DNA of 64,000 nucleotides from Schmidtea polychroa. Taxonomy: Eukaryota. The notes under the pieces were generated by a model that had not been told where the DNA came from, did no database searches, and worked only from the letters and a program-made list of their open reading frames with translations. The translations under genes were made by a program, and so were the position numbers. Positions within the stretch are counted from its first letter, which is position 1. Every line of letters starts with the position of its first letter. Shown piece after piece: positions 5,666-56,634 of the stretch. The DNA lies in the NCBI GenBank assembly GCA_044892525.1, contig CM097888.1, positions 81,282,001-81,346,000 of the forward strand, written 5' to 3'.

Positions 5666-5825
5666 NNNNNNNNNNNNNNNNNNNNNNNNNNNNNNNNNNN
5701 NNNNNNNNNNNNNNNNNNNNNNNNNNNNNNNNNNNNNNNNNNNNNNNNNNNNNNNNNNNNNNNNNNNNNNNNNNNNNNNNNNNNNNNNNNNNNNNNNNNN
5801 NNNNNNNNNNNNNNNNNNNNNNNNN
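5666..5825. other. Assembly gap (160 N)
   Basis: Run of N. Confidence 1.
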
Positions 5826-6418: not shown

Positions 6419-6574
6419 NNNNNNNNNNNNNNNNNNNNNNNNNNNNNNNNNNNNNNNNNNNNNNNNNNNNNNNNNNNNNNNNNNNNNNNNNNNNNNNNNN
6501 NNNNNNNNNNNNNNNNNNNNNNNNNNNNNNNNNNNNNNNNNNNNNNNNNNNNNNNNNNNNNNNNNNNNNNNNNN
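6419..6574. other. Assembly gap (156 N)
   Basis: Run of N. Confidence 1.
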
Positions 6575-14870: not shown

Positions 14871-14933
14871 TAAGTTAACAAATTAAAATTTTAATTAACT
14901 TAAACAACGGATTCTAAAATGAATAATTTTAGC

Positions 14934-15185
14934 TTTAATTTATAAAACGTAAATTACCCATTTTTATGGTATTAATTACCAAACCAGTAAGGGTGGCTTT
15001 AAATTTATTCCATTAAAATCGAACTTTAAATTTAATTTATAAAATGTAAATTACCCATTCTTAGGATATTACTTACTAAAGCAGTAAGGGTGACTTTAAA
15101 TTTATTTCATTAAAATTGAACTTTAAATATAATTTATAAAATGTAAATTACCCATTTTTATCGTATTAATTATCAAATCCGTAAG
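14934..15185. repeat. 97-bp tandem repeat, 2.6 copies
   Basis: Units start at 14934, 15031 and 15128 (T.TAATTTATAAAA.GTAAATTACCCATT...). Confidence 0.9.
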
Positions 15186-15327
15186 ACTATTGTCGAGTGG
15201 GTGAACTGTTGGGTGAAATGTATATTATGCTAAAATGTGAGTGGTGAAAGTGTATTCAGACGTTTTTGACTAACCCCGTAGTTGGATGGACAGGGAGTCG
15301 TGTTAATGTCCCTTTATCATTACAGAT

Positions 15328-15786
15328 ATGCCCAACACCATGATATGGAACGCACAGGCCGGACCCTCATCCTTCGATTCAAGCCGCGGACCACCAAGCG
15401 AGGAAACAGACGAAGCCGTACGACTACGGGAAGATGCAGAGGTTGCCCGCCTAAGGTCCCGGTGGATATGGTACAAAATCCACGATTGGACCTATCAGAA
15501 TGTGGTTCCAGTGACCCCGAAGATCGAACCGTATATTAATTATACGTCACTGACTCTGAGTGACGCCTTCGACAATGTGAAAGAGGCGGTGGACCGGCTA
15601 GACCGGCTCGAAACATCAGTCCTGGCCGGCGAGTTGGAAGACATCGACGGCTACGCCCGAGCCCAGTGCCACCCAAAGCGGACCGCAGCTCTTCGCCGGG
15701 AGCTGGAGTACTTAGGAACTTCTCGACGGGGAGCGGAACCGGCGAGAAAACGTGGGCGTCCGCGGAAAACCGCCCAATTCAACTAA
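15328..15786 (+). CDS. Unknown 152-aa protein with C-terminal AT-hook (RKRGRPRK); cassette copy 1, ORF1
   Basis: GC-rich open ORF preceded by acceptor TTTATCATTACAG|AT-ATG. 12/31 identities by hand to 34942-35295 in the core (D.....V.RL...E.....G.LED.DG.A) plus the shared AT-hook. Confidence 0.65.
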   Translation: MPNTMIWNAQAGPSSFDSSRGPPSEETDEAVRLREDAEVARLRSRWIWYKIHDWTYQNVVPVTPKIEPYINYTSLTLSDAFDNVKEAVDRLDRLETSVLAGELEDIDGYARAQCHPKRTAALRRELEYLGTSRRGAEPARKRGRPRKTAQFN

Positions 15787-16184: not shown

Positions 16185-16674
16185 GTGAAGAGATGCTCAT
16201 TTTTATTTATTTCAGTGATAAAACTCCTGGAAGAAATGAGAGCCGACAGAGAGAGGGCGCAACGACAGGTAGAAGAGTATCGGGCCAAGTTAATGCGACT
16301 TAAGGCCCATTGCCGAAACTTCGAGGGCACCTGGTTCCCGCCCACAGAGATGAAGAAGCGAATGAAACTCATCACCCAGTTGCAACTCCAGAGCGCCCAA
16401 GATCAAGTTGAGTTGCGGGCCCTCCGCCTGAGGGTGAGAGAGCTGGAAGTCCAGTCGCACCAACAAAACCTTGATCGAGAGGTCATCTCCGGGATCCGCA
16501 ATGGATGAGCTGCTCCACCAACGAAAGGAATGCGCAGCGTCGAAGATCCCGAAGAAGAAGATCCGGCCGGGTAAAGCGGCGCGGGCGAAAATCCGCCAAG
16601 CCTGTCAGGCCCAAGCGACGCTCAAGGCTACTTCGTCAGAGTCTGCACCGAAAGAACCGACTATAACCCTATGA
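16185..16674 (+). CDS. Unknown coiled-coil protein; cassette copy 1, ORF2 (overlapping basic tail ORF 16471-16674)
   Basis: Acceptor TTTTATTTATTTCAG| at 16215. VIKLLEEMRADRE...KAHCRNFEGTWFPPTEMKK has 20/48 identities by hand to the 33565-33786 ORF. AATAAA at ~16694. Confidence 0.65.
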
Positions 16675-16789
16675 GTTTTGATTTTGTGTTGTGAATAAAT
16701 ATTATGGGTGTATTCATATCTGGGTATTTCGAATTTGCCATAATGTTGAGTTTCGGAATAGGGACAAAGAAAAACGGACATAGGCCTTC

Positions 16790-16990
16790 TATCGGCAGTC
16801 CGTGAACCCCAGTGGGTACTAGACAATTATAGTATGCTAAGCATGCTCACTTTTTGCTAGTGCCCAAGCCCTTGATACAGTACCAACGTTGATTACTCAA
16901 CGGGTATCAAGTGGTCAGCTATAAATTGTATTCTTGGTTACGCTGGAAACAGCATGAGGGGGTAAAGATTTTTCAGTACCTGTAACCCAC
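16790..16990 (+). ncRNA. Candidate structured RNA element (three stems), cassette copy 1
   Basis: Stems 16814-22/16857-65, 16870-77/16903-10 (inner 16886-91/16896-901) and 16936-42/16981-87. Pairing is preserved with different sequence in copy 2. Strand of function unknown. Confidence 0.55.
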
Positions 16991-33039: not shown

Positions 33040-33240
33040 GTGGGTTACAGATAGTGCATATTTTACCTTTCCGAGCTTTTACCAGTGTAACCCAGAATAC
33101 AATGATGTATTATCGCTTGGCGCCCATTGAGTGGTCAATGTCAGTACTGCACCAAGTGGGAGAGTGCTCGCAAAAAGTGAGCTCACTACTTGCACTATAG
33201 TTGTCAAGCACTCATTTGGGTTCACGGACGGCCAATAGAA
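33040..33240 (-). ncRNA. Candidate structured RNA element, cassette copy 2
   Basis: Stems 33213-05/33170-62, 33156-49/33123-16 (inner 33140-35/33130-25) and 33093-86/33049-42. Homologous to 16790-16990. Confidence 0.55.
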
Positions 33241-33389
33241 GACTTATGTTCGATTTATATTGGTCCCTTTACTAGATTGTTTTCCCTACTCCAGTATACT
33301 TTCGTCATACACACCATACAGATAGAAGCCCACCTATACGCACACATACATATGTACACATGAAACGACTACCTTTTAATAACAAATAT

Positions 33390-33786
33390 TTATTTACTAA
33401 TGTACACGGCACATTCGAAACTCCTCTTCTGCTGAGCTGGGTTGGCCATACGAGTCTTTTCAATTTTTCCCGCGTATCGCGGCCCGATCGTTGTCGCTTT
33501 GGTTTGATGGGTTGTGCGGGTGATCTTCTCCAGCGCCCGCACTTGAATTTTTAGCCCGTATATTTCAGTTTGAACCTGGGCGCTCTGAAGTTGGAGTTAC
33601 TGTATCAACTTCAGCTGTTTTTTTTATTTCGGTGGAGTTGAACCAGGTGCTCCCGAGTTCTCGACATCGCGCCTTGAATTTGACTATTTGGGTCTGCAGC
33701 TTCTCCATTTGTTGGTGCGCCTGCTTCCGGTCCTTGTTCATGTTTTCCATTAGCTCGAACACTAAATAATGACACGTGAATTTCAA
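33390..33786 (-). pseudogene. Coiled-coil ORF2, cassette copy 2 (frameshift in an A-run)
   Basis: Acceptor TGTCATTATTTAG|TG. VFELMENMNKDRKQAHQQMEK..KARCRELGSTWFNSTEIKK, then LQLQSAQ in a shifted frame as in copy 1. Confidence 0.6.
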
Positions 33787-33933
33787 AATAACGTATACCG
33801 ATGTTCTATCAAGTTGACACAGATTACAGTCACACTGCGTCTGAAACAGTTACACTCCTTAATTTCCTCAGAGTTTATTCCTTAACTGGATGTTCATTTA
33901 GTCAACTCTAAGTTCCCTTTTTTAGATCTTTCC

Positions 33934-34941: not shown

Positions 34942-35295
34942 TCAGTCCCTTCTACCTATTTTTCGGGGTCGTCCTCGTTTTCTGGGTATCACTAGCTGTG
35001 GTGATTGGACGTTGGTCGAGCTTGTGTAGACCCGCTCCTGCCCCATTTGGATGCCTGACATCCAATCGGTTTCCATCCCGCTGAGGGCATCTCCATCCGG
35101 ATCCTCCAACTTTCCGGTTCGGATTCGGTGCTCTATCTCACGGAGCCGTGCTACCGAATAGCCTATATCGTCAATGTACTGTATACGGTCCTCCCGCTCT
35201 GGGTTGGTCATGGCTTCTTGTTTCACCCAGCATGGGGCTCCTGGTTCCCTGCCCGTCTGGGCTACCTGAGGACGGCAGTGGAGCTCAATTGTCAA
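34942..35295 (-). CDS. AT-hook ORF1, cassette copy 2
   Basis: ...YIDDIGYSVARLREIEHRIRTGKLEDPDGDA...PRKRGRPRKI; homologous to 15328-15786. Confidence 0.6.
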   Translation of the reverse strand: MTIELHCRPQVAQTGREPGAPCWVKQEAMTNPEREDRIQYIDDIGYSVARLREIEHRIRTGKLEDPDGDALSGMETDWMSGIQMGQERVYTSSTNVQSPQLVIPRKRGRPRKIGRRD

Positions 35296-35564
35296 CCCAT
35301 CAGACCAATGGTTTTCAATGTGTGCTCCACAGACCTCGGGGGCTCCTCGGCAAGGTTTAAAGAGCTTCTTAAAATTTTACAATTTCTGAAATTTTTGAAA
35401 TTCAGTGATGAACGCCGACATATGTCCTTCTACCGACGTCTTGAACCCACTCAAAAAGTCTAAAAGGGAGTAGTCTTAACACAGAGGCTCATCTGCCTTT
35501 TAGGTCTCATGATTCCGTGCATTATCAACATGGTCGTAATCATGGGTACCTAGTTAGTTTTGAT

Positions 35565-36627
35565 TTGGGGCCTGCCGAAGTGACTTTTTTGCCGAAGTCC
35601 GAAGTTCAAATTTTTAAATTACTATTTGGCCGAAGCCGAAGTCGAATCAAATGTCTGGTGCGCGAAAATAATTTAGGGACCTGTACCTACTGCAATGACC
35701 TACGGCGATACCAAGAAAGGAATCAACGCTAACCAAAATTATAACTAAATTATAGCTAACCAAAGCAGATGTGGCTGATGAAGATGATGTGGAAGGTGTT
35801 GGGCCTGCTGGCACTTCATCACGCGAGTTGTCCGTCGACGTTACAGCATTCATTGCATCCAGAAGCCATTGTTTTGCAGTGGCAGCAGTTTCCGCGTTAA
35901 AGAGACGAAGCTTGTACACTGGATCCAAAGCAGTAGATAACACGCACAACTTATTATTTTTAACGTTAGCATACCTGCGGCTGAGATCCGCAAGCATTTC
36001 AGCACGCATTGTTTGAATGCAGAGGTCTTCACCCTCCTTTGCTGGTCTCTTCAAAACTGCCTGAAGTACACGCACACTTGGAATAATCATTCCGCTTGTT
36101 GCAGGTGACAAACTAGCATTCCGCTTTTCCTCTTCAAATGGACGCAATGTCGACACGACCATTTCAATTAAGTTCCACTGATTGTTTGTCAGATTGGTGA
36201 CTTCGTTGTCTTGGATGTAGAGAGCTATTGCTTTTCTCTGTTCGATCAAACGTATAGTCGGAGATTAACGTATAAGGCTGCTATAGTGTAGAGAATAGAG
36301 ATGCATGAACATGAACGGCTATTGTGTACACAGCGACACAGCCACGGCTAGGCTAGACTTGTCAGTGTTCGTATGACATAGCCGTAGAAAGGAAAATCGA
36401 TAGTAAAGAAAAATGAACAACAACAACTAAGATTTTATTTACTTTCATTGTTTGCGTGTCGCCATTAATTTTAATGTAAATAATCACGGAACAATAATAA
36501 TTTATTATCGCTCAAGCAAAATTTCAATATTTGGATCGTACAGGGTCTATTGCCGAAGTCCGAAGTTTCCGAAGTGTTTGAACTTTGGTCCGAATCGAAG
36601 TTCAAATCAAAGTTCGGCAGGCCACTA
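35565..36627 (-). mobile_element. Internally deleted hAT (ZBED-like) transposon, 1063 bp
   Basis: TIRs TTGGGGCCTGCCGAAG / TTCGGCAGGCCACTA; TSD GTTTTGAT on both sides; CCGAAG subterminal repeats; transposase fragment 35647-36249 (WNLIEMVVSTLRPFEE, STALDPVYK). Confidence 0.9.
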
Positions 36628-37376: not shown

Positions 37377-38780
37377 ATGTTCGAAATAATGGATATCACG
37401 ATGAAGTTTATGGATATGAATAAAGAAGTTCTATTATTTTTATGTATATTCCTGTTCATGTGGTTGACCTATTTGTGGGATGCTTACTTAGATTGTAGAC
37501 AGCAAAAGGTTCTTAATAAATTAGTCGAGCCTACAACTGAAACTTCTTTAATAATGAATGAAGAAAATTATAAAAAAGCAAGGCTTTATAGTATAGATAC
37601 TAAAAGATTTGGCTCGTATCATAAATTATACCAAATGGTAGAATCCTCTCTTGTGTTGTATTATAATATTTTACCATGGCTGTGGAAGTTTTCGCTTTCC
37701 TTAATTGTGAGCAAAGTCGAAAATTTGACAGTTATTCAAGAGTTGAATGCGTCTATGCTGTTTTTATTAATTGCTGGTCTGTATTCGTTTGTTTTTGGCA
37801 TGCCTTGGAAAGTGTATAGTATATTTGTTATTGAGGCAAGACATGGTTTCAATAAACAAACACCTTTTTTCTTTATTAAAGACCAGATCAAGTCTTTGTT
37901 TGTATCAGTCATTATAATGTTACCAATTTCATATTGTTTATTATTCATTATAAAGTTAGGGGGTCCATATTTTTATGTGTATGCATGGTGTTTTGCTTTT
38001 GTAATAATGATGTTTTTAATGTTTGTTTATCCTGAATTTATAGCTCCATTATTCGATAAATATACTCCGTTAGCTGATGGTGAATTGAAAAAAGGAATTG
38101 AAAATCTTGCTGAGAAAATTGGATTTCCACTGAAAAAGTTATATGTTGTCGAGGGTTCTAAGAGGTCTAGTCATAGTAATGCTTATTTTTATGGAATTTG
38201 GAAAAATAAAAGAATCGTTTTGTTTGATACATTGTTGCAGAATTATGTGACAGATTCAGACTTGAATAAAACAGAAAATGATGAAAGTTCAGACGGGAAA
38301 AAAGGTTGCAATGATGAAGAAGTTATTGCTGTTTTAGGACATGAATTAGGCCATTGGAAATTAAATCACGTATTACAAAGTTTAATAATTAGTCAAATTA
38401 ATCTGTTTCTTATGCTTTTTATGTTTGGTATTTTGTTTAATTTAAATGTCTTGTTTAGAGCTTTTGGTTTCGTGGAAATAGAAACACCCACTTTAATTAG
38501 GTTGTTATTGATAATTTGCTATTTATTTAGTCCTTATCATTTCGTTTTGGAATTTTTTATGACTTTGTTGTCAAGAAAAAAGGAATTTGAAGCTGATGAG
38601 TTTGCAGTAAACCTGGGCTATGGAGAAAAATTGATTAATGCATTAGTTAAACTGCATAATGATAATTTATCATTTCCAATTTTTGACAATTTGTATTCAA
38701 TTTTTAATCATTCTCATCCTCCTATTTTAGAAAGAATAGAAGCTATTAAGAATAATAAAGAATATAAAAAAACAAAATGA
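37377..38780 (+). CDS. ZMPSTE24: CAAX prenyl protease 1 (peptidase M48), 467 aa, single exon
   Basis: HELGH zinc motif, VVEGSKRSSHSNAYFYG, IVLFDTLL, EFEADEFA, HSHPPILERI; multiple TM segments; uninterrupted ORF. Confidence 0.97.
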   Translation: MFEIMDITMKFMDMNKEVLLFLCIFLFMWLTYLWDAYLDCRQQKVLNKLVEPTTETSLIMNEENYKKARLYSIDTKRFGSYHKLYQMVESSLVLYYNILPWLWKFSLSLIVSKVENLTVIQELNASMLFLLIAGLYSFVFGMPWKVYSIFVIEARHGFNKQTPFFFIKDQIKSLFVSVIIMLPISYCLLFIIKLGGPYFYVYAWCFAFVIMMFLMFVYPEFIAPLFDKYTPLADGELKKGIENLAEKIGFPLKKLYVVEGSKRSSHSNAYFYGIWKNKRIVLFDTLLQNYVTDSDLNKTENDESSDGKKGCNDEEVIAVLGHELGHWKLNHVLQSLIISQINLFLMLFMFGILFNLNVLFRAFGFVEIETPTLIRLLLIICYLFSPYHFVLEFFMTLLSRKKEFEADEFAVNLGYGEKLINALVKLHNDNLSFPIFDNLYSIFNHSHPPILERIEAIKNNKEYKKTK

Positions 38781-38886: not shown

Positions 38887-40433
38887 ATGGCTTCTAATTT
38901 AGATGTTGAAGTACTTTCAAAGTATAATAATATTTTATTAGTTATTTCCAATAACCATAATTTAAAAGGTGTATTATTACCTGTTAATGACGAGTAATTT
39001 TATAACAATAAATATATCTAATTGTTATCATTAATTATAGAAACAAACTTCGATTAGAACATTTTATTAATAATTATAATAAAGAAAACAATAATATTGA
39101 AGTGAAACCTGAACAAGAAAGCTTATTTTGTATACCTGATTCAACGTTGTCTCATTCAGCAGTAGAATCAAATATGAGCACCAATCTCAGTAATAATAAT
39201 GACGTGTGTAAAAAATGTAAACGTGTATTAAAAGCAACTAAACGAAAATTAGTAAGCAGAGAAGTAGAACGCCTTACTAATCATGGATTCAATGAAGTAA
39301 TTTTAAAGAAAAAAAACATATCGAGACGATCTACAAAAACTAAAGAAGAATTAGTTAACGGAGAAAAGTTCAATGGAAAAATTTATAAAAAGAGATCACA
39401 TGATCAAAATAAGGAAAGTGATTCAGATTTAAATAACGGTGGTTCTAAGGTTTTAAATGCCAAAAAAGACGAAGTTTTATCCATTCGAAAAACTAAAGAC
39501 AGAGCTCTTAAAACAAAAGCTAATGAGAAGATAATTGACTTATGTACTAGAAAACCAAGTAAGGTCAAAAAGTACAAACAAGAATTAAAAAAGAAATTAA
39601 AAATAGATCACTCTGATGAAATATTATCCGCGAATTCACCAGTTAAAGTGTCCGATGCATCTATATATGATTTTGTTGATGAAGATTACGAATCTGAACC
39701 CATTAAACCTTTATATAAAGAAAATAAAAAGTCTTATTTCATTGATAAAAGTAGTAATTCTACGAAACTCGATAAACGAAGCTATCAACGAAAGTTACCA
39801 GCAAAAGCTAGTAATAAAGATGATGAAATTCATTCAAATCCTGGCATTATGTTTTATGAATATAAAGGTACTAAGTTTAGTATAAATAATATAGTTTGGG
39901 CTAAAATTCCGGGCTATCCATTTTGGCCGGCACATATTAAGTCATTCGATAATGTAAGTGCCTCGAAATCTCAGGGTAAAAGGTGTCGAATTAATTGGAT
40001 TGGTTGGAATCAAAAGTCATTTCTACCACTTAAATCTCTATTGCATTTCGAAGAGCATTTCAAAATGAAGTATTCCACGAAGTTCAAATCACAAAAGTAT
40101 AAAACCGCTATTGAACTCGCTTGTAAAGAATTGAATTTAAATCTTGATGATTTGATAGGAGAATTGCCTAAGAAATCGCCAATGTCGGATAGGAATAATT
40201 CATCGCAAAATTCAAACCACGGCAAAAGGAAATCAATAGATTTAGATGACATTTTCCCTACTAAGAAAAATTCGAAAAATATTTCAGACATTGATGTGGT
40301 TGCCAAAGCTTATTCGGATGAAGATACGGACGAAGAGGAAAAAGCTCGATCTGCCTTGATCACAGCCGAAAGTTTGGAGGCGAACAGAATGATGTCGGAC
40401 ATGATGATGAAAAAGACTGAATTTGATTACTAA
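38887..40433 (+). CDS. PWWP domain protein, PWWP2-like, 499 aa, 2 exons
   Basis: Exon 1 38887-38993, 47-bp GT-AG intron, exon 2 39041-40433 (1500 nt total). IVWAKIPGYPFWPAHI...INWIGWNQKSFLPLKSLLHFEEHF..KYKTAIELA resembles the PWWP2 domain. Confidence 0.88.
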
Positions 40434-44000: not shown

Positions 44001-44063
44001 CTCTTATCAATAAATTAGTGTTTTCAACTTTTACATTTTTGAGCGCGTTTGGTAGTTCTGGTG

Positions 44064-46470
44064 TGTCACAGGTAAACCCAATTTTACATTGTCAAGTTGT
44101 CGCCCAACGCAACCCATAATGCAATGGTTTGCTATGCCATTCGACACCCGTTGGATGATCAACGTTGGAACAGTGTTGGATGAGAGAATACTCGCGAACT
44201 ATAAAATATTAAAAGAGAGTTTGACTGCTACTCCGCATTTCCTATGCTGCTGTTCATTAGTTCATTAGCTAGAATTTTCTCACTCTGTACGTCCTGTTGT
44301 AATGATTGGATCTAATCTCTCGCTCTAAAGTAATATATCATGATTAAAGTGCTTGAAGGTATGGGAAATTGCTAAGTATTAGTTAAGTAATTTTAATAGT
44401 TATATACACAGTCAAAGTTTATAAAGTTTAATTATTTACTATTTATTTTTACATCAAAATTTCACCAGAAAAAAAACTCTATAGGACATCGTTTCCCCCC
44501 TCTACTCTGTATCCACTGCTGTAAATTATCTCAGGCACTACCCGTCATCGTCGTTGATTCCCAATTCTTCACACTAACAAAATGATAACGAAGAAAATAA
44601 ACAACACTTTTATTTCGACTTAATAAAAACACATCAATGCTCCAAATACATCAAGCACCAATCGTGGCATCGGATTTTGTTCGGGAACCGACTTTGTGTA
44701 CGTCTGTTGGATGTCTCAACTGGATGCCAAAGCACATTTTCTAGCACTTCGATTTCGCTATTCAAGTATTGTGCAAGATCTATTTTCCATGATTGATCTA
44801 CCAGGTTACATTGTTCGCCACCAGTACTGGGAATCAGTCACGTTCAACGCGAGGTAGATGTCCAATGGCTTCGTGTATTGCATGAACAACCAGGGACCGA
44901 GCTAACCGCGTGTCGCTCAGTATGGGTTCCTTCGTGAGCATAATCATAGGTTCCTATTAGTGGTTCGCAGATAATCCACATTTTACTATGTCGTGTTGTC
45001 GCTAACGCAACCAAAGATACAATGGTTTGCATCTGTTGAATGATGAACGTTTGAACTGTTTGTACTGGGCGAATACTCGTGAAAAGTTTGTCACCTTTGT
45101 CACAATCAATTATCCTTGTGGTGACAAATTTCATTATCCACTCTTCTTTGAGTATTCGAGCCATTGCCTTCTCATATTGTATTTTAACCGCATGTAGGGA
45201 AATAAATTTACTGCGATAGTCAATAATCCCAATAACGTATAGTTCACCTCTTATTACTGGTTGTAATGAGCCACAAAAATTCATGTTAATTCTCTTGTAT
45301 AACTTAGAATCGTTTGTACATATCATTTTTCTTTAATTCTTGTTGTATCAACCTTTCGTTTTTAACAATTTTCACAAGCTTGTACAGTATTAAGAACAGA
45401 TTGTTCTAAATCTTTCATGTTAAAATTGTTTGATATATGCATTTTGACTTTCATAGCACCAGCATGATAAATCTTTTTATAATACTCTATGATGAACTTA
45501 GATTTGTTATCCTTTGGAATCCAAATTTTGTTATCAGTTGTTACTACAACTCCATTTATGTATTTAAAGAATGTTTTATTCGGGTTTTTATCAATACTTT
45601 CTTTCAACCTTTCAATATTTTTGCCATTTTTTTCTATTATTAGTGTTAACAATCTGGTTTTTAACTTACCCATCTTAGGGTTTTCATGAACGTTTGGTAA
45701 ACGTTTCAAACCAAAGCGTTAGCGTTACTATGATTTTCACCTTTTCTGCATTGTAAATCAATGTCTAAACTGCCAAGATAATTTATCCATGTTTGAAATT
45801 GTGAAGTAATAGCTTTCTTAGTTTTCATCATAAATGTAATAGCTTTGTGATCTGTTCTTAGTATAAAACCCTTACCATATAAATAATGCTTAAAATGATT
45901 CGTAAAATAAAATTTAGATAATAATAATCTAGATAATAGCCTAATTTATGCTTACTCATGGGCCGAGATTTATACGCAATGACTCTTTTTTATTTCACTT
46001 TGTTTGAGATAATACAGCACCGATGAGATCAAAGCATCGTTATCCAATATGAACAGCTTAGTAAAATCTGAAAATTTTAAAACAGATGTAGACGTTGATT
46101 TTAGCTTTAAATTTTGAAAAGAACTTTCACAGTCATCAGTCCACATTAGTTTCTTTTGTCTACTCCCACATAGCGCTTCTAATACTTTTGAGTCTTTTGT
46201 ATAATTTCCTATAAATTTGCAATAACAATTTGCTAGGCCTAAAAATCCTCCCAAACTGGCTTCATTCTTTTTGAATTGACATTTAGATGGGCATATTTTT
46301 GAGTTTGCTAATTCAATATTTTGAAATACTTTTTCAATAGTTTTATAATGTTCATCTAGTATTATAGAGAAGATAAGGATATCATCAAGATTCAATTCAC
46401 CAAGAACAAGATTCATAAGTCTTTGAAATGTTGCTGGTGCGGAAGCTATCCAAAATGGCATTATATTGAA
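44064..46470 (-). mobile_element. Ty3/Gypsy 3' part: RT-RH-INT remnants, PPT and 3' LTR (44488-44064)
   Basis: [28 protein letters not shown] (RT); YHAGAMK..CENC (zinc finger); integrase core at 44844-45326; PPT AGGGGGGAAACGA then TGT...ACA 425-bp LTR. Confidence 0.8.
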
Positions 46471-46698
46471 GTAATACCCTCTACCAAATTTTCCTATCAT
46501 TGAAATATCAGGTCTAGCCTGAAGTGCTTTCAAGAATGCCTTAGTTCCAGATCTTGCAATTGTTCTCAAATTATTAATAAAATCTGCCTTTGTCATTCCG
46601 ATTCCAGTGTCGATAATAGTTAAAGTTCCAGCATCTTTATCGTGAATCATTTGAATCATTAAATCATTTGCATTGTCAGCATGATACACAGCTTCCAT
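46471..46698 (-). pseudogene. HSP90: HSP90 N-terminal ATPase fragment A
   Basis: [53 protein letters not shown] vs canonical [19 protein letters not shown](K/R)[28 protein letters not shown]. Confidence 0.92.
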
Positions 46699-48361: not shown

Positions 48362-48819
48362 AAAAGAGTGCCGGGGCCTATAGTATCTTCAATTTCCCTT
48401 GCTGACCTAGGTATCAAACTCCCTCATCCACTGGAACTTACACAATGGAAACCTATTTCCTTTGAGACAAACGTATAACTCTTTCCCCAAACTTCATAAA
48501 ATTATAGCACCTTAAAAAGACGCCCGCTAAACTAACTCTAAAAACTGGGGAGTGAAGGGTGGCCAAAACTGATTTAAAATGCCTCAAATAATTTTCAACA
48601 TACATATATAAAAAATTAACAATATTCAAAATTGATTTTGATTGCCTCACATCACTTTCAATATTCATGTATAAAAAATTAAACTAATAATCACTTATCT
48701 GATACTGTCTATATCACCTTTAGTTTGGTAAGGCTGGATCATCTGGATCACCTGCGCGATTAATCTCTTTTCTGGTGCATAGCCCCTTGAAGGGAACCAC
48801 ACTGCTACCATGGTGAATT

Positions 48820-48938
48820 GAGTAGAACCCCTTACTCAATTGTCCTATAATTGAAACATCAGCTCCAGCCTGAAGTGCTTTCACGAATGCCTTAGTTCCA
48901 GATCTTGCAATTGTTCTCAAATTGTTAATCAAATCTGC
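48820..48938 (-). pseudogene. HSP90: HSP90 N-terminal ATPase fragment B
   Basis: [39 protein letters not shown]; ~14 mismatches in ~118 nt versus fragment A. Confidence 0.9.
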
Positions 48939-49734
48939 GAAACTTCAAAAATATCTTTATTCTACAAAATACGCGTGAAACTCCTTTTTCGAAACAAACT
49001 ATGAAACTTCCAGAAAACTTTCAATAATAAGTCAATTAATAAAACTAATAAAGTTCAAAATACATTGTATGTGACTGTGTGCGCACACATAGATATATAC
49101 ATTGTATATTATACAATTTCAAAACAACACAGACGTGATAATTAACCTCAGGATTGACCAATTATTTATGATTTATTTTATTTTCTAATTATTATATTTT
49201 ATTTAATTATATTTATTTCGCCATCATGATGGGTTTGGTCATTTTCTAGAATTTTCTATGCTATTTTTAATATTTTTATAATATAATTCCTATTTTTTAT
49301 TAACCAATTTTCTAAATTTTATATTTTTATCTAGTTGTTCGTTTCGGGGCCATGTAAGATTTCGTCATTTTCATAGAATATTCTAGTGGGTTTTATATAA
49401 TTTTTATTATTCCTAATCGATTTTTTATGCTATTTTAATGAACTCCTTCTATTTCTAGTTTCTATTTTCTTTTGTCACAATTTGAATTTGCCTACTCCTG
49501 GATATTTGTTTATACTATTTTATGTTTGTTTGTGCAATACTTCTTGCTTTTGCTATTAATTTACTTTATTTTTGTGTTTCTTCATTTTGATGTTGAGTAG
49601 TCTTTAATGTGTTTCTTTGGTGTTTTAATTGTTTTTCGATTTTTACTCGACTATGTCTGCGAGCTGTTTTTACACATTCTGATCACAAAATCAAATTTAT
49701 TTGGGTATAAAGTCAGGTTTTACCCAATACTTCT

Positions 49735-50233: not shown

Positions 50234-50733
50234 TGTGAGGTGTTTTCAGCTGAGAATTAAATATTTCAATTATTTATTACAATAATTTTAAATGATAAAT
50301 AATTGACTATTTAAAATAACTTTTAAAAACATTTTTAAATTGAATTTTTTAAATTGAAATTTTTAAATTTTGAAATTAAAAAATTAAACAAAAAAGTAAA
50401 TCATTTTTAAATAAATATATTTTAAATATCATAATTTTAATAAATGGTCTTTGAAATATTTTATTCAACGCTGAAAATTTGTTTGGAAATTATACAATAT
50501 TTCATTAAATAAATACTTGGAATTATGACGTTAACTTTTGAACCGGATTTAAAAAATAATTTAGAAGATGTGTTAGCAGCTTCTAATATGTCGACCACGT
50601 CTATGGATTTTTTCATAAAGAAGCTATTTCCAAACGATTATCATAAATGAGATGACGTTGAAGCATTCATTAAAGAATGCGATTAATATTTTAAAGTGGA
50701 TCGAATTATTGATCGATAAACATATCATATCAT

Positions 50734-50736
<3 letters not shown>

Positions 50737-50813
<77 letters not shown>
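50737..50813. repeat. (AT)38 microsatellite inside gag
   Basis: Directly visible, preceded by (CATAT)3. Confidence 0.95.
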
Positions 50814-50816
<3 letters not shown>

Positions 50817-53800
50817 GTTGACCAATATATCAAGTGTTATAAGGAAAGATTGCGGAAGAAATTCGTCAAGAAAACAAGTTTGGCAGAGGATTTACAATCT
50901 GCTATGTCTTATAGACAGACGAGTAAGGAGCCCGATAAATATTTTACTATCATAGACGAGTTAGTCGATAAAATATTGGGGCATGAGTTAAACAAGGAAA
51001 GTTTAACAGAATATCTGCTGGTATACTGTGCAGCCGAGAAGACTTTAAAACGAAAATTATGTCTAAGTGACACCAAAGAAACAACAGAAGTGAAGAAAAA
51101 CATCAAGAAGTTACACGAATCTCGTATAGTTGCAGAAGAGATCTATGCAGTGAGAGAAAGAAGGCCAGAACAGAATATGCTGACTCCCAAATTATTAATT
51201 ATTATAATAAAAATAAAATATAAAGTATTATAGAAAAAGATGTGAAAGATACAGAGGTAGCGAAAGAAGAAAATAATGTAATTAGGAAAGTAAACAGATT
51301 CATAAAAAAGGATTTTGCAGAAAAAGAAAGAGACAAAATACAAATACTCACATTAGATGAATGGAAAAATGATATTATTAGTTATGATAAAATGCAAGGC
51401 CAACCAAGTGTAACTATTAGAATACAAGACCAGAAGATGGAATGCTTGCTCGATACAGGCGCTACAGTAAATGTCATGAGTTGGAGCAAATTTGAGAAAC
51501 TTAAAGATGTAAAATTAACAACAACGACTGATACATTGAGATGTGCAAATAATAGTGTTTTAGAAACGAAAGGTAAAGTAATATTAGAAATAGGAATAAA
51601 TGTTTGGAAAAGAAGGGTAAAGTTTACGATAATAAGCTATTAGACTCCAGAGGTAATTGGTGGTATAGTCGCAAAAACAATTTGGTATACAACTAAAGTT
51701 GCCAGTAGAAGAGGTCGAGAAAACGAAGCAAGAGTACATATACAGTATCGCAGCCAATTTTTGGAAGACAATAACAGAGATGGAACGATTTCAAATAGCA
51801 AAGAATACTTTAAAGATAAATAACCCGATACTACTAAACATTATAAAAAAGAATCAAAATGTTTTTATGGCTGATAAATGGGACATTGGCTGCACAAAGC
51901 TGTTGAAGCATAAAATAGAAACTCAAGGAAAACCGATAAATATTAAACCTTGGAGACAACCAGTCAACTTAGAAGGTAAAATAGATAAAGCGATAAAAAC
52001 TTATGGGTAAAACAATATTATCAAAAAGTGTAATTCACCATGGAACACTCCATTAATATGCTCCTGGAAGAAAGAAAATCAAGATATCAGGTCTTGATTT
52101 CAGGCAATTAAACCTAGTAACAGAGAGACAGGCGTTCCCTATGCCGAATATAGCAGAGATGTTAGCGAAATTGGGTGGAGCAAAGTATTTCAGTTCGATA
52201 GATCTTGGAAATGCAGATTATCAAGTAGAACTAGAAGATAATCAAAGTTAAAAACGGCGTTTTCAACCAAATCAGGTCAATACTGTTTTAACAGAATGTC
52301 ATTTGGAATAGCAGTGGCACCAAGTACATTTCAGGAACTGATGGGAAAAGTATTAATGGGTGCGAGATATGCAGCAGTATACCTAGACGATATTTTGATA
52401 TTTACAGAAACGATCAATCATCACTACGAAGTTTTAAATGAAGTGCTGGATAAAATTGGGAAGGCGGGTCTTAGTGCCATATCCTTAAAGAGGAAGTTAA
52501 ATTTTTAGTCCACATAATCAACAAAGATGGAATACGGACCCATCAAAGCTTGACGCGATTAAATCATCTGAAAAGTCAAAATGTGTTAAGAATCTGAGAA
52601 GCTTCCTAGGAATATTTAATTAATACAGAAGATTTTTAAGGGAATACGCAAAAAAGGCAAGAGTTTTAGAAGAGCTATGCGGGTTAAACAACCAAAAATC
52701 AATTTGGACTGACGGATGCAACATCGCATTCGAAAATAGGAAAAATGCTTTAATGTCCTCACCTATTCTAGGGTTTCCAGATTTCGAAAGAGAATTCATT
52801 CTAGATACTAATGCGAGTTTTGACACGATTGGAGCAGTATTATCACAGAAAGACGACAACGGGTGCGAAAAGGTTATAGCATACGGTTCTCATGCAATGA
52901 GCAATCATGAAAAGGGAAAAAGGATATATAACAAGGAAAGAGTTGCTGGCAATCTATTATTTTTGCCAACACTTCAATTATTAATTATATGGAAAACGGT
53001 TCATTTTGAGAACAGACCACAAGGCTAACACGTTTTTGTCATCCACAAAGAAACCAATAACAACGCAATTTCAGACATGGATTAACTACCTCAGTAGCCT
53101 GGATATTAAAATAGAGTATAGAAAAGGTACGAATCATGCAAATGCAGATATGTTGTCAAGGAGTACATGTGGAACATGCACACAATGTTTATTGGCACAC
53201 GAAGACGTGAAAGTGGAAAGAATGAAAACCGGAAGAATAAACACGAAGGAAAAAGCTGAAGATTATAAGTGGCAAAAAGATAATACAGAAATAGAACAAA
53301 TAAAAAAGGAAATAGCACAGGGTTCAAGTTAAAAATTTATACTGGTAGACAACGTGTTGAAAACTATAGAGGGTAAGATATGGATACCTAGAGACAAAAG
53401 ACAAGAAATGATAAAGAGTCTGCATATTTTGCAATCACACGCAGGAGCAGAAAAGGTGACAAAATATGTAGCGGACAATTACGATATGGGAGACATAAAA
53501 GAATCAGTAAAAGAAATAATTGGACAATGTGAGGCATGCCAAAGAACGAAAGTTGTGACAACAAAGATGAAGGAAGAGACAATAAAACTGACGGCAGAGG
53601 AGCCATTGGAGAAAGTGTACATTGATATATGTGACCCATTACAGGAAACATTTAGAAAGAAAATATATATAGTCGCAATGATTGATCAATTTAGCAGATA
53701 TATCTCTCTTACTGCTGTCGCTAAACAGGATGAAGAAACGGTGAAGGAAACAATACTACAAAAATGGATTCTTAGATTTGGAGCACCAAAGGAAATTCAC

Positions 53801-54593
53801 ACAGATTGTGGAAAAGTATTTGAATCTAAGACGATGAAAGATTTCACAAAATCAAGTCCATACCACCATAATGCAAATGATGTGATAGAACGTCAATTCA
53901 CGACAATAAGAGACTATTTAAATGCACCATTAAAAGAAAGAAGTAGAACAGATTGGGCAGAGATCATACCAGAGATTGAATTTACCATGAATGCAACATT
54001 TCAGAAATCAATAGGGCGAAGTCCCACAGAACTAATATTTGGAAGAAAAATAGCTCTAGAATAATTTCATAGTAAGCGCCGTTTTCACAAAAAGAAGACA
54101 CACGAGAAACAACGCAAACAAAAAGATCATTCAATATTGGAGGTGAGGTTCTGGTAAAAGTCGAATCAAGAACGAAAGACAAGGTAAGATACGAAGGGCC
54201 ATACAGAATAATGCAGAAGATCCATGATCGCCGATATCTCCTACAAGACCAAAGTGGGAAAATGCTTCAAAGAAATGTTGAAAAGATAAAGAAATTTCTT
54301 AAAGAAGGGGATGTGAGGTGTTTTCAGCTGAGAATAAAATATTTCAATGATTTATTAAAATAATTTTAAATGATAAATAATTGACTATTTAAAATAACTT
54401 TTAAAAACATTTTTAAATTGAATTTTTTAAATTGAAATTTTTAAATCTTGAAATTAAAAAATTAAACAAAAAAGTAAATCATTTTTAAATAAATATATTT
54501 TAAATATCAAAATTTTAATAAATGGTTTTTGAAATATTTTATTCAACGCTGAAAATTTGTTTGGAAATTATACAATATTTCATTAAATAAATA

Positions 54594-56634
54594 CATTAAC
54601 GATTCACAAAAGGCAACTTCGCAAAAAGAAACTTTTCACAAAAAGAAACTAACGTAAAGAAACTTTTTTTGATTCAAATTAAAAAAGTGATTCAATAAAA
54701 GGAACTTTTGAAAATTTTGCTTTGTATATTTTGTTTAACGTAAATGTTTAACATTGCTAAATTTTCAAATAACTTTTGATTTACGTTAAATTTATTATAC
54801 CTGAGGTATTGCACTGTTAATGAAGCTATATAGTATGTACTATAAAATTCAATTTTAAACATTAAATATTCAAAAATAGCATTTGTTAGGCCCGCTATGA
54901 ATAAAAGAAAACAGAAACTAACAATTGAGGATAAATGTAATATCCTGACTGCATTGGAAGATGGTACCAAAGCCAACAATATTTGCGCACAATACGGTGT
55001 GAATAAAAGTACAATTTCTAAGATCAGAAATAACAAAGAAAACATAAAAGAATTTGCAAAGAATTCTATCCAGTCTACGAACAAAATTAAGAGAATTTCT
55101 ACAGTTAAATTTCCAGATATTGAAAAGGCCCTTTATCAGTGGTTTTTAAATGAGACACTCAAGCATAACATAATTAACGATGATATGCTTAGAATCAAAG
55201 CGCTAGAATTTCACCGTGATTTGAACTCTGACATTTTGTTTTCAGGCAGTCACGGTTGGATTCAAAAATTTAAAAGACGGCATTCAAATTCGAATCCTCA
55301 AAATTTGCGGAGAAAAATTATCCGCTAATGATTCTGCTGTACCTGCATTTATTGAAAATTTTAAGACGAATATTCAACGGCTAGGATTGCGACCTGAGCA
55401 AATATACAACGCAGATGAAACTGGATTAATTGTCAAAAATTTGAATTCCAAAACTTTAGTAACCAATCAAGAAAAATCTGCACCAGGTAGAAAATCCAGC
55501 AAAGAACGGATTACTGTAATGGGGTGTGTGAATGCAACTGGACAGCATAAACTACCCTTGATGATTATTGGGCGATCTAAAAATCCACGCTGCTTCAAAA
55601 ATACGACTTTACCTAGCATGCACTACCACTCATCAAAAAATGCGTGGCAAACAGGAGCGCTGTTTAAAGAATGGTTCCATGACGTATTTGTGCCAGAAGT
55701 TAAAAGAAATTTGATGCAGAAAAACTTACCTTTGAATGCGATTCTTCTGCTGGATAATGCCAGCTCCAATTGTTGTGGGGAAGAATTGAAATCGAGTGAT
55801 GGAAACATTTCGGTTATATATTTTCCTCCAAACACAACAGCGTTATTGCAACCACTCGATCAAAATATTATAAGATCACTAAAAACGTTGTACCGCAAGA
55901 AACTCTTACTCAGTTTATTGTCTCACAATAATCAAAATTTAGACGAAAAATTAAAGCACGTTACATTGAAAGAAGTTGTTTACATGGTGGTGGAGGCATG
56001 GAATGAAGTTAATATTCAAACAGTCAATTCTAGTTTTAAGCATCTGTTCTGCTCAGTTGATGAAATAATTTTTAATTTGCCACAGAATCACTTTTTAGAA
56101 GAGGACGAAATTCCATTAATAGAACTTTACCACCATGTAGTTCCAGGAGATAATATGAATGACGAGCAGATATTGAATTGGGCAAGAGGAAGTAACGAAA
56201 TGTCAAGATCATTAATTACCGAGGGCGAAATAATTGAAAATATTAATATGGATGATGCAGACAATTGTGGTGATTTTTCAAGCCCTGATGTTGACATTGC
56301 ACTCAGGAGCGTAAATGTAACTCTTAATGGGGCCGAATCTAATTTATCCATTTCTGATATATTGTTTCTTCGCAATATCAGAGACAAAATAACTTTAAAG
56401 AAGATTATGAACTAGTGTTTTCTACAATAAAAGTTTGTTTTCGTTATATATGCTATTTCTAATTGCTTAGTGATAAATATAAAATAATATTTACTTTAAA
56501 ATGTACTTAGAAATTGTTGTTTTTGCACACAAAATAGAATTGTACACTAAATTCACAAAAATAAACTTTTTACAGAAAAAGAAACTTTTTTTGAATTTTG
56601 TGTCAAAGAAGTTTCTTTTTCTGAATCTTCACTG
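54594..56634 (+). mobile_element. Tigger/pogo DNA transposon, 2041 bp, near-intact
   Basis: TIRs CATTAACGATTCACAAAAGGCAACT / AGTTTCTTTTTCTGAATCTTCACTG; TA TSD. CENP-B HTH plus DDE (YNADETG, LLLDNA, QPLDQ) from 54897 to 56415 with a single extra base near 55283. Confidence 0.95.

Follow-up and report, generated by a model that had tools for sequence, protein, structure and literature searches.

Two small cassettes in this DNA carry a similar noncoding block at their 3' ends, and the question is whether that block encodes a structure under selection, at which level the structure would act, and from what sequence it arose. The window (the whole stretch of 64,000 nucleotides analyzed here) consists of AT-rich metazoan DNA with a GC content of 20 to 30% and many decayed gypsy, pogo, and hAT transposable elements. 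Two GC-richer islands, at about 13.9 to 17.0 kb on the plus strand and about 33.0 to 36.7 kb on the minus strand, each carry a diverged copy of one small cassette; runs of N occupy 5666-5825 (160 bases) and 6419-6574 (156 bases). A sequence-only reading of this locus had described a three-stem element downstream of each cassette, with compensatory substitutions between the copies. The stems and motifs that it quoted were all located in both copies where it had placed them. The coordinates of these and the other features are collected in Table 1.

Both cassettes have the same layout, with an ORF piece that ends in an AT-hook-like motif and, 3' of it, ORF2, which encodes a coiled coil and a basic tail. 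The upstream pieces of cassettes 1 and 2 are 28% identical (E = 4e-7), and the two copies of ORF2 share 39 to 55% amino-acid identity by tblastx. A search of 1.8 billion representative proteins with the ORF2 exon returned a single relative cluster (P0001/P0123). P0001 derives from two short metagenome contigs, L004 and L006, and is 85% identical to ORF2 copy 1 at the protein level and 88% at the DNA level; it had no match in viral contigs. Relative to the intact P0001, the ORF2 of cassette 1 contains one frame change, and that of cassette 2 contains one relative to both copy 1 and P0001. The dN/dS between copy 1 and its metagenomic relative (P0001/L004) was 0.12, which points to purifying selection on ORF2 and, therefore, to a protein that is functional now or was so recently. 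Pfam searches of the cassette pieces gave sub-threshold AT_hook and hAT-like_RNase-H matches only, neither cassette contained a reverse transcriptase (RT) domain, and no convincing terminal inverted or long direct repeats were found around the cassettes. The two-ORF cassette is lineage restricted and probably derived from a mobile element. The 3' region of the metagenomic relatives is absent from L004 and L006 because both contigs terminate 21 nt past the ORF2 stop codon. These contigs (ENA samples ERZ2271643 and ERZ2270917) are of low coverage, are 99.4% identical, and share the same end base; their common end point could be an assembly break at a following repeat. Two further observations concern the cassettes themselves. 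Upstream of cassette 2, a 205-codon open piece (35650-36264, minus strand) has a sub-threshold match to the hAT-like RNase-H fold with an LDP..K-type motif; it has no counterpart in cassette 1, and no homologue was found for it in the protein search. It may belong to the cassette or be the relic of an adjacent hAT element. Within cassette 1, a 97-bp AT-rich unit is present in three tandem copies between the GC-rich pieces (14925-15215, plus strand), with the second and third copies 87% and 67% identical to the first.

Table 1. Features of the cassettes, the block and its relatives, numbered from the first letter of the window
Feature	Positions	Strand	Size or basis
Cassette 1 upstream ORF piece, ending in AT-hook-like RKRGRPRK	15307..15783	+	weak Pfam AT_hook match
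Cassette 1 ORF2, coiled-coil and basic tail	16200..16674	+	protein relative P0001
AATAAA, copy 1, 20 nt past ORF2 stop	16694..16699	+	read from sequence
Block copy 1, whole noncoding module 3' of cassette 1 ORF2	16763..16990	+	blastn and alignment with copy 2
CCGTGAACC motif, alternative partner of the stem 3 5' arm	16800..16808	+	RNAalifold
Copy 1 stem-loop 1: outer 9 bp, middle 3 bp, apical hairpin 5 bp	16814..16865	+	17 pairs
Copy 1 stem 1 helices	16814-16822/16857-16865; middle 16824-16826/16854-16856; apical 16831-16836/16842-16847	+	
Copy 1 stem-loop 2: outer 8 bp, inner hairpin 6 bp, 4-nt loop	16871..16911	+	14 pairs
Copy 1 stem 2 helices	16871-16878/16904-16911; inner hairpin 16887-16892/16897-16902	+	
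Copy 1 stem 3, loop holding the invariant GTAAA	16936..16987; arms 16936-16942/16981-16987	+	MAFFT alignment
Block copy 2, 3' of cassette 2 ORF2	33040..33266	-	blastn and alignment with copy 1
Copy 2 stem 3	arms 33093-33086/33049-33042	-	
Copy 2 stem-loop 2	33156-33116; arms 33156-33149/33123-33116	-	
Copy 2 stem-loop 1	33213-33162; arms 33213-33205/33170-33162	-	
AATAAA, copy 2, overlapping the ORF2 stop codon	33389..33394	-	read from sequence
Cassette 2 ORF2, coiled-coil	33390..33849	-	tblastx to copy 1
Cassette 2 upstream ORF piece with AT-hook-like motif	34945..35376	-	comparison with cassette 1
Copy 3, diverged block relative	44058..44227	-	CM R1 22.4 bits; nhmmer 1e-38; pairwise z = 14-19
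Copy 4, relative of the block's 3' two-thirds, in frame in integrase-core ORF	44957..45131	-	CM R1 14.0 bits; nhmmer 1e-32
Degenerate Ty3/gypsy-like pol: RT, RNase H, integrase zinc finger, integrase core	44847..46698	-	Pfam, BLASTP/tblastn

The block lies 88 nt past ORF2 in copy 1 and 123 nt past it in copy 2, on the same strand as ORF2 in each case, and an AATAAA precedes it in both copies, in agreement with its earlier placement 3' of the ORF2 poly(A) signal. Over about 230 nt, ending in ...GTAACCCAC, the two copies are 71 to 73% identical, compared with about 60% for the ORF2 coding core and about 47% for the spacer and downstream flank, which is chance level here. A blastn comparison gave 16760-16990 against 33268-33040 as the sole significant DNA similarity between the cassettes (71%). 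By these identities, no other part of the two cassettes, which have diverged strongly elsewhere, is as well conserved as the block. Mismatches between the copies fall 23/22/19 by codon phase, with no periodicity, and both copies contain stops in every frame; the block shows no coding signal in either cassette. As a single sequence, copy 1 folds with a z score of -3.6.

The evidence for a selected fold comes from stem-loops 1 and 2. In this two-stem structure, which was chosen with both copies in view, 31 of 31 pairs are formed in both copies despite 18 substitutions; stem-loop 1 keeps 17/17 pairs in copy 2 with 5 double changes, and stem-loop 2 keeps 14/14 with 3. The changed pairs comprise 8 double compensatory changes and 2 single changes compatible with wobble pairing, and none is broken. 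When the 3' partners were shifted by 1 to 3 columns as a register control, pairing was 31 to 50% and there was at most one double change. The RNAalifold consensus energy was -46.75 kcal/mol, compared with -21.0 ± 3.8 kcal/mol for 1,000 column shuffles (best, -34.5), a distance of about 6.7 standard deviations. In neutral simulations with substitutions matched in number and type to those observed, 20.8 ± 2.4 of the 31 pairs survived, and all 31 survived in 5e-6 of runs. Transitions and transversions were found in a 16:2 ratio in paired columns and an 18:21 ratio in unpaired columns (Fisher P = 0.003). The stems are not merely more conserved than their surroundings, given that the substitution density was equal (29%) in paired and unpaired columns. 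The minimum free energy (MFE) fold of each copy, taken on its own, yields the same two stem-loop domains. We also applied a more conservative count, in which the whole MFE structure of one copy was carried over to the other with its weak pairs included: 54 of 67 pairs were kept, compared with 45.2 ± 3.2 (P = 0.004), and 53 of 68 were kept when the other copy's MFE was used (P = 0.018). The surplus of retained pairs by this count is modest.

We conclude that stems 1 and 2 are selected as a sense-strand structure, most likely of RNA, although the covariation amounts to one pairwise comparison because the well-folded copies number only two. Statistically supported covariation, by which structured cis-regulatory RNAs are recognized in general terms, is present for these stems, as judged from two sequences. 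The details of stem 1 differ from the earlier description: the stem itself is present, its apical hairpin had been left off the list, and the GCTCACTTTTTG motif, which had been considered unpaired, in part pairs inside stem 1. Matched double changes could also arise without selection, through template-switch mutations or conversion between the inverted-repeat arms of a hairpin, and a single such event can alter both arms at once. We consider this origin highly improbable here. The eight double changes fall in four different helices, G-U intermediates are found where copying of one arm from the other would have produced perfect Watson-Crick pairs, and the substitution density is the same inside and outside the stems.

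The level at which the structure acts can be addressed by comparing the strands. The sense strand folds with -42.0 kcal/mol and the antisense strand with -33.2 kcal/mol in one copy, compared with -34.7 and -33.0 kcal/mol in the other, and the stems contain three G-U pairs per copy. A DNA-level signal, in which single-stranded hairpins of the block would serve to replicate or transpose the cassette in the manner of Helitron or parvovirus-like termini, would be in keeping with a block that is terminal in its unit and holds several hairpins. The G-U (in DNA, G-T) pairs and the difference in strand energy, however, favor one strand, and RNA. Moreover, the block ends in ...CCAC rather than, like a Helitron, in a CTRR preceded at about 10 nt by a short GC-rich hairpin (no CTRR end is present in the block, and a Helitron 3' terminus was rejected as a candidate), no matching structure or inverted repeat is found at the other end of the cassette, and no Rep or transposase is consistently linked to it, the hAT-like piece being confined to copy 2. 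We therefore regard a DNA-level signal as very unlikely. The structure proposed by the sequence-only reading was borne out in part, as a sense-strand structure under selection in stems 1 and 2, in which substitution is compensatory, transition biased, and tolerant of G-U pairs and is accompanied by no coding signal.

That reading had attributed compensatory change to three stems. This holds for stems 1 and 2 and fails for stem 3, which shows no double change and has an alternative partner. The stem 3 helix (GGTTACG/TGTAACC) is found in both copies, and the differences between them are single changes compatible with wobble pairing. RNAalifold prefers the upstream motif CCGTGAACC (16800-16808) as the partner of 16936-16946, which is the 5' arm of stem 3; this motif is identical in copies 1 and 2 and nearly identical to TGTAACC, the motif of the stem 3 3' arm. 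The 5' arm is accordingly modeled with two mutually exclusive partners, CCGTGAACC or TGTAACC, either of which it can be predicted to pair with. In a MAFFT alignment made blind to structure, stem 3 pairing in copies 1 to 4 of the block was 7/8, 8/8, 7/8, and 6/8, with one A-U to G-U to G-C series and two mismatches across the four copies. The four-copy support for stem 3, which depends on this alignment, is suggestive.

Copies 3 and 4 were recovered as new minus-strand hits (44227-44133 and 45131-45022) of a covariance model built from stems 1 and 2, and both extend into the 3' domain of the block, a part that lies outside the model. Pairwise local alignments among the copies scored 8 to 19 standard deviations above shuffles, and an nhmmer profile of the shared 140 nt found exactly four places in the window (1e-32 to 1e-38). 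By these scores, the four copies are homologous. The structural model (R1) and a model of the sequence only (R2) gave 22.4 versus 19.6 bits for copy 3 and 14.0 versus 16.5 bits for copy 4, and the fold of copy 3 on its own was no better than shuffles (z = -0.2). Given that the structural model adds nothing and that copy 3 folds like shuffles, we treat copies 3 and 4 as sequence relatives and not as evidence of structure. The search for homologues with a covariance model, which had been recommended earlier, was successful in finding these two copies and brought no structural gain from them. A four-sequence pair count on the alignment fitted by the covariance model (92.6% paired, 13 double-change pairs) was discounted because the structure itself guided that alignment and copies 3 and 4 score just as well under the sequence-only model. 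No cassette was recognizable upstream of copy 3, where similarity was at chance level; an extension of copy 3 homology into the cassette was suggestive by eye and proved to be at chance level when tested.

The position of copy 4 bears on the origin of the block. The degenerate Ty3/gypsy-like pol in which it lies has Pfam matches to RVT_1, RT_RNaseH, RT_RNaseH_2, and Integrase_H2C2 and is broken about five times, by three in-frame stops and two frame changes. Copy 4 is situated inside a 162-codon open frame (45332-44847, minus strand) 3' of the RT, RNase H, and integrase zinc-finger pieces. Residues 13-86 of this ORF align with the other integrase of the window (E = 3e-12), and residues 10-86 align with the PFV integrase core. 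All of the integrase alignments (BLASTP, PFV, and tblastn) stop at an F-T-S motif, whose codons in copy 4 are already about 24 nt into the stretch with homology to copies 1 to 3; F-[A/T]-S is encoded there in the same frame by all four copies. Downstream of F-T-S, no integrase similarity was found, and an integrase origin of the block itself is without statistical support. Translations of the block had no match in Pfam or PDB, and the silence of Pfam is weak evidence because its integrase-core model ends near F-T-S. The corresponding DNA of the other integrase showed no similarity to the block. Mismatches between copies 3 and 4 fall 8/7/11 by phase, with no codon periodicity, and copy 4 alone is open.

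Because copy 4 is in frame in the integrase-core region of a Ty3/gypsy-like pol, the element, and specifically the 3' two-thirds of the block, is related to a retroelement. We consider it likely that these two-thirds were derived from gypsy-type integrase-core coding sequence; the alternative to such descent is that one copy of pol picked up block sequence. Copies 3 and 4 have nothing that corresponds to the first ~75 nt of the block, where the 5' arm of stem 1 and CCGTGAACC are located. If the block did come from integrase, then stem 1 joins cassette-specific sequence to integrase-derived sequence, and the structure would be younger than that fusion. We found nothing specific on structured RNAs inside integrase-coding regions in the literature, including a review of Ty1 and Ty3 (PMC4974528), and an exact look-up of the copy 4 ORF protein and the Ste24 ORF protein described below, made in search of syntenic loci, returned no record. 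The integrase-coding DNA of copy 4 may form a long interrupted hairpin of its own (45160-45070, minus strand), its outer and inner helices each perfect over 8 bp, in a register unlike that of copies 1 and 2 and with a fold z score of -2.3. A weak similarity to the block at 52811-52875 on the plus strand (nhmmer E = 1.5; sequence-only model 7.3 bits, E = 0.27), in the second gypsy element of the window upstream of its integrase, is probably due to chance.

These findings allow two other accounts of the block to be weighed. The block could be an inert relic of an integrase gene or other transposable element that was duplicated together with the cassette, with stems that arose by chance. Copy 4 does sit in frame in an integrase ORF, copies 3 and 4 keep the structure no better than a sequence-only model predicts, and the window is crowded with decayed transposable elements. 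A relic under drift would be expected to keep about 21 pairs rather than 31, however, and would not explain a transition bias confined to paired columns or a consensus energy so far beyond the shuffles; in addition, conservation within the cassette is highest in the block, though the neutral flanks are saturated. We find an inert relic unlikely. The second account is that the block is a 3' tail recognized by an RT, that the cassette is a nonautonomous retroposed unit, and that copies 3 and 4 are 5'-truncated insertions. The four copies have one 3' boundary (...CCAC) and differ in their 5' extents, the structure is at the very 3' end of the unit, and the GC content falls sharply past copy 1. 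On the other hand, the flanks beyond ...CCAC differ in all four copies and hold no tail, whether poly(A), microsatellite, or other short tandem repeats; no target-site duplications were seen; no RT ORF is present upstream in the cassettes; and R2 and LINE elements of Rfam were unmatched. Copy 4 also continues the integrase frame with integrase-like first codons, which fits descent better than insertion. We consider an RT-recognized tail quite unlikely, and a SINE or LINE tail was likewise rejected, there being neither an upstream RT ORF nor a tRNA-like part. The sequence-only reading had named an ordinary terminal hairpin of a transposable element as one of the findings that would count against it; the block is indeed related to a transposable element and is not an ordinary terminal hairpin.

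We compared the block with catalogued RNA families. An Rfam cmscan of the whole window at gathering thresholds gave no matches, and permissive scans of both copies (E ≤ 10) found nothing inside the block, ribozyme families included, so that the Rfam search called for earlier matched no family under strict or permissive settings. Hammerhead, HDV-like, twister, pistol, hatchet, and other Rfam ribozymes were rejected in the absence of catalytic core motifs and covariance-model matches; the earlier remark that no hammerhead core is present was correct and extends to every ribozyme and other Rfam family. ARAGORN detected nothing tRNA-like in the block. No homologues of the block were found in viral contigs, metagenome contigs, or prokaryote genomes. 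A two-motif pattern of the block had no matches in viral contigs; its three matches in metagenome contigs and one in prokaryote genomes were attributed to chance, given that similarity was confined to the motifs.

An independent small RNA gene or self-cleaving ribozyme downstream of the cassette poly(A) signal would be consistent with a block that follows AATAAA in both copies and combines a multistem architecture with strictly conserved single-stranded motifs. Neither the Rfam scans nor the tRNA search supports it, however; a T5 run inside stem 1, internal to the block, would stop RNA polymerase III; no conserved upstream promoter element is present, the spacer being about 48% identical, which is chance level; and homology to an integrase ORF fits a noncoding RNA gene poorly. 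This account seems to us quite improbable. Nothing points to a ribozyme or to a free-standing new noncoding RNA, and the element is related to a transposable element.

Among known systems, the cis-acting RNA elements of retroelements and retroviruses (constitutive transport, packaging, and dimerization signals) are similar to the block in that they are multihelix modules in the 3' part of a transcript. Like them, the block is retroelement related and conserved by compensatory change, with action in cis being our proposal. Among curated retroviral and retroelement RNA families it matches none, either by sequence or by covariance model, and, unlike these elements, it follows a cassette that lacks both gag and pol. 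In a retroviral CTE-type element, the host export receptor binds paired internal loops; the block has no Rfam match to a transport element of this type. The 3' untranslated region (UTR) stem-loops of non-LTR elements (R2, stringent-type LINE tails, and SINEs) are likewise 3' terminal, structured, and common to different units, and all block copies share one 3' boundary as such tails do. The block differs from R2 and LINE tails in having no upstream RT ORF, no 3' tail repeats, and no Rfam R2 match and in that one of its copies belongs to an integrase reading frame. Small retroelement ribozymes are also multistem, junction-like, and linked to mobile elements; the block, unlike them, has no catalytic core. 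Self-cleaving ribozymes of retroelements include the hammerhead in Penelope-like elements and retrozymes and the HDV-like ribozyme in R2. Exapted 3' UTR modules of transposable elements resemble the block in being partly homologous to an element gene and now in a noncoding 3' position. The usual examples of these are SINE or LTR pieces, and we know of no described case of an integrase coding fragment turned into a covarying two-hairpin RNA. By analogy, the block may work like the cis-acting RNA elements of retroelements and viruses or like exapted 3' UTR pieces, and it belongs to none of the families tested.

The one statement that the comparison of the copies supports is that the block is a structured sense-strand RNA under selection. 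Beyond that, we lean toward the view that a retroelement fragment was exapted here and is maintained as an RNA structure acting in cis at the 3' end of the cassette transcript, and exaptation is the most likely origin because the 3' two-thirds are homologous to the integrase-core coding region. Under this exaptation model, descent would run from integrase gene to block, and the block would consist of two independent stem-loop domains held by selection together with a less certain third helix. The cassette transcript would include it, either within a long 3' UTR or through read-through past AATAAA. The main mRNA may end before the block, given that both copies have an AATAAA at the ORF2 stop or immediately beyond it; if so, inclusion of the block would depend on read-through or on the use of an alternative, more distal 3' end. 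For such a distal site, the invariant GTAAA, which precedes the common ...CCA-C boundary by about 22 nt, would fit. The predicted structure could then act in cis on the cassette RNA, in 3'-end formation, stability, export, or packaging. More tentatively, and with a greater chance of being wrong than right, the block may be integrase-coding DNA that was turned into a selected RNA with two covarying hairpins and a possible two-state third helix, serving as a switch or protein-binding platform. Should this bolder version be true, protein-coding DNA of a transposable element would have given rise to a new RNA family.

A clean covariation signal is combined here with an unusual link to an integrase. 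Confirmation with more copies would add a family of structured RNAs, as yet uncatalogued, from an AT-rich metazoan genome, provide a clear example of retroelement coding DNA reused as RNA structure, and offer a handle on how a small cassette that is otherwise an orphan controls its transcript. Failing such confirmation, the block would remain an ordinary repeat derived from a transposable element.

Several other features of the window were recorded. An intronless 467-aa CAAX prenyl protease (Ste24) ORF is located at 37377-38780 on the plus strand and a 443-aa PWWP-domain ORF at 39102-40433 on the same strand; flatworms supply the best named relatives of the Ste24 ORF, with identities of about 52%, and a single UniParc protein matches it at 91% identity. 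The second gypsy-like element (50652-54064, plus strand) encodes an aspartyl protease and an integrase with a zinc finger. A 283-bp repeat at 50234-50516 and 54312-54594, 98% identical between its copies, may be the LTR pair of this element. Located 3' of it, at 54897-56415 on the plus strand, is a pogo/Tigger-type transposase with CENP-B N-terminal, HTH_Tnp_Tc5, and DDE_1 domains. Finally, the gypsy-like RT ORF at 45970-46698 (minus strand) starts with about 70 residues that match Pfam HATPase_c_3 (6.6e-5) and that we take to resemble the N-terminus of an Hsp90-type ATPase. A second copy of this piece is found 2.3 kb away, within 48723-48944 on the minus strand (46465-46587 versus 48817-48938, 88% identity), and the piece may be a fragment of a host chaperone that was captured by, or fused to, the retroelement.
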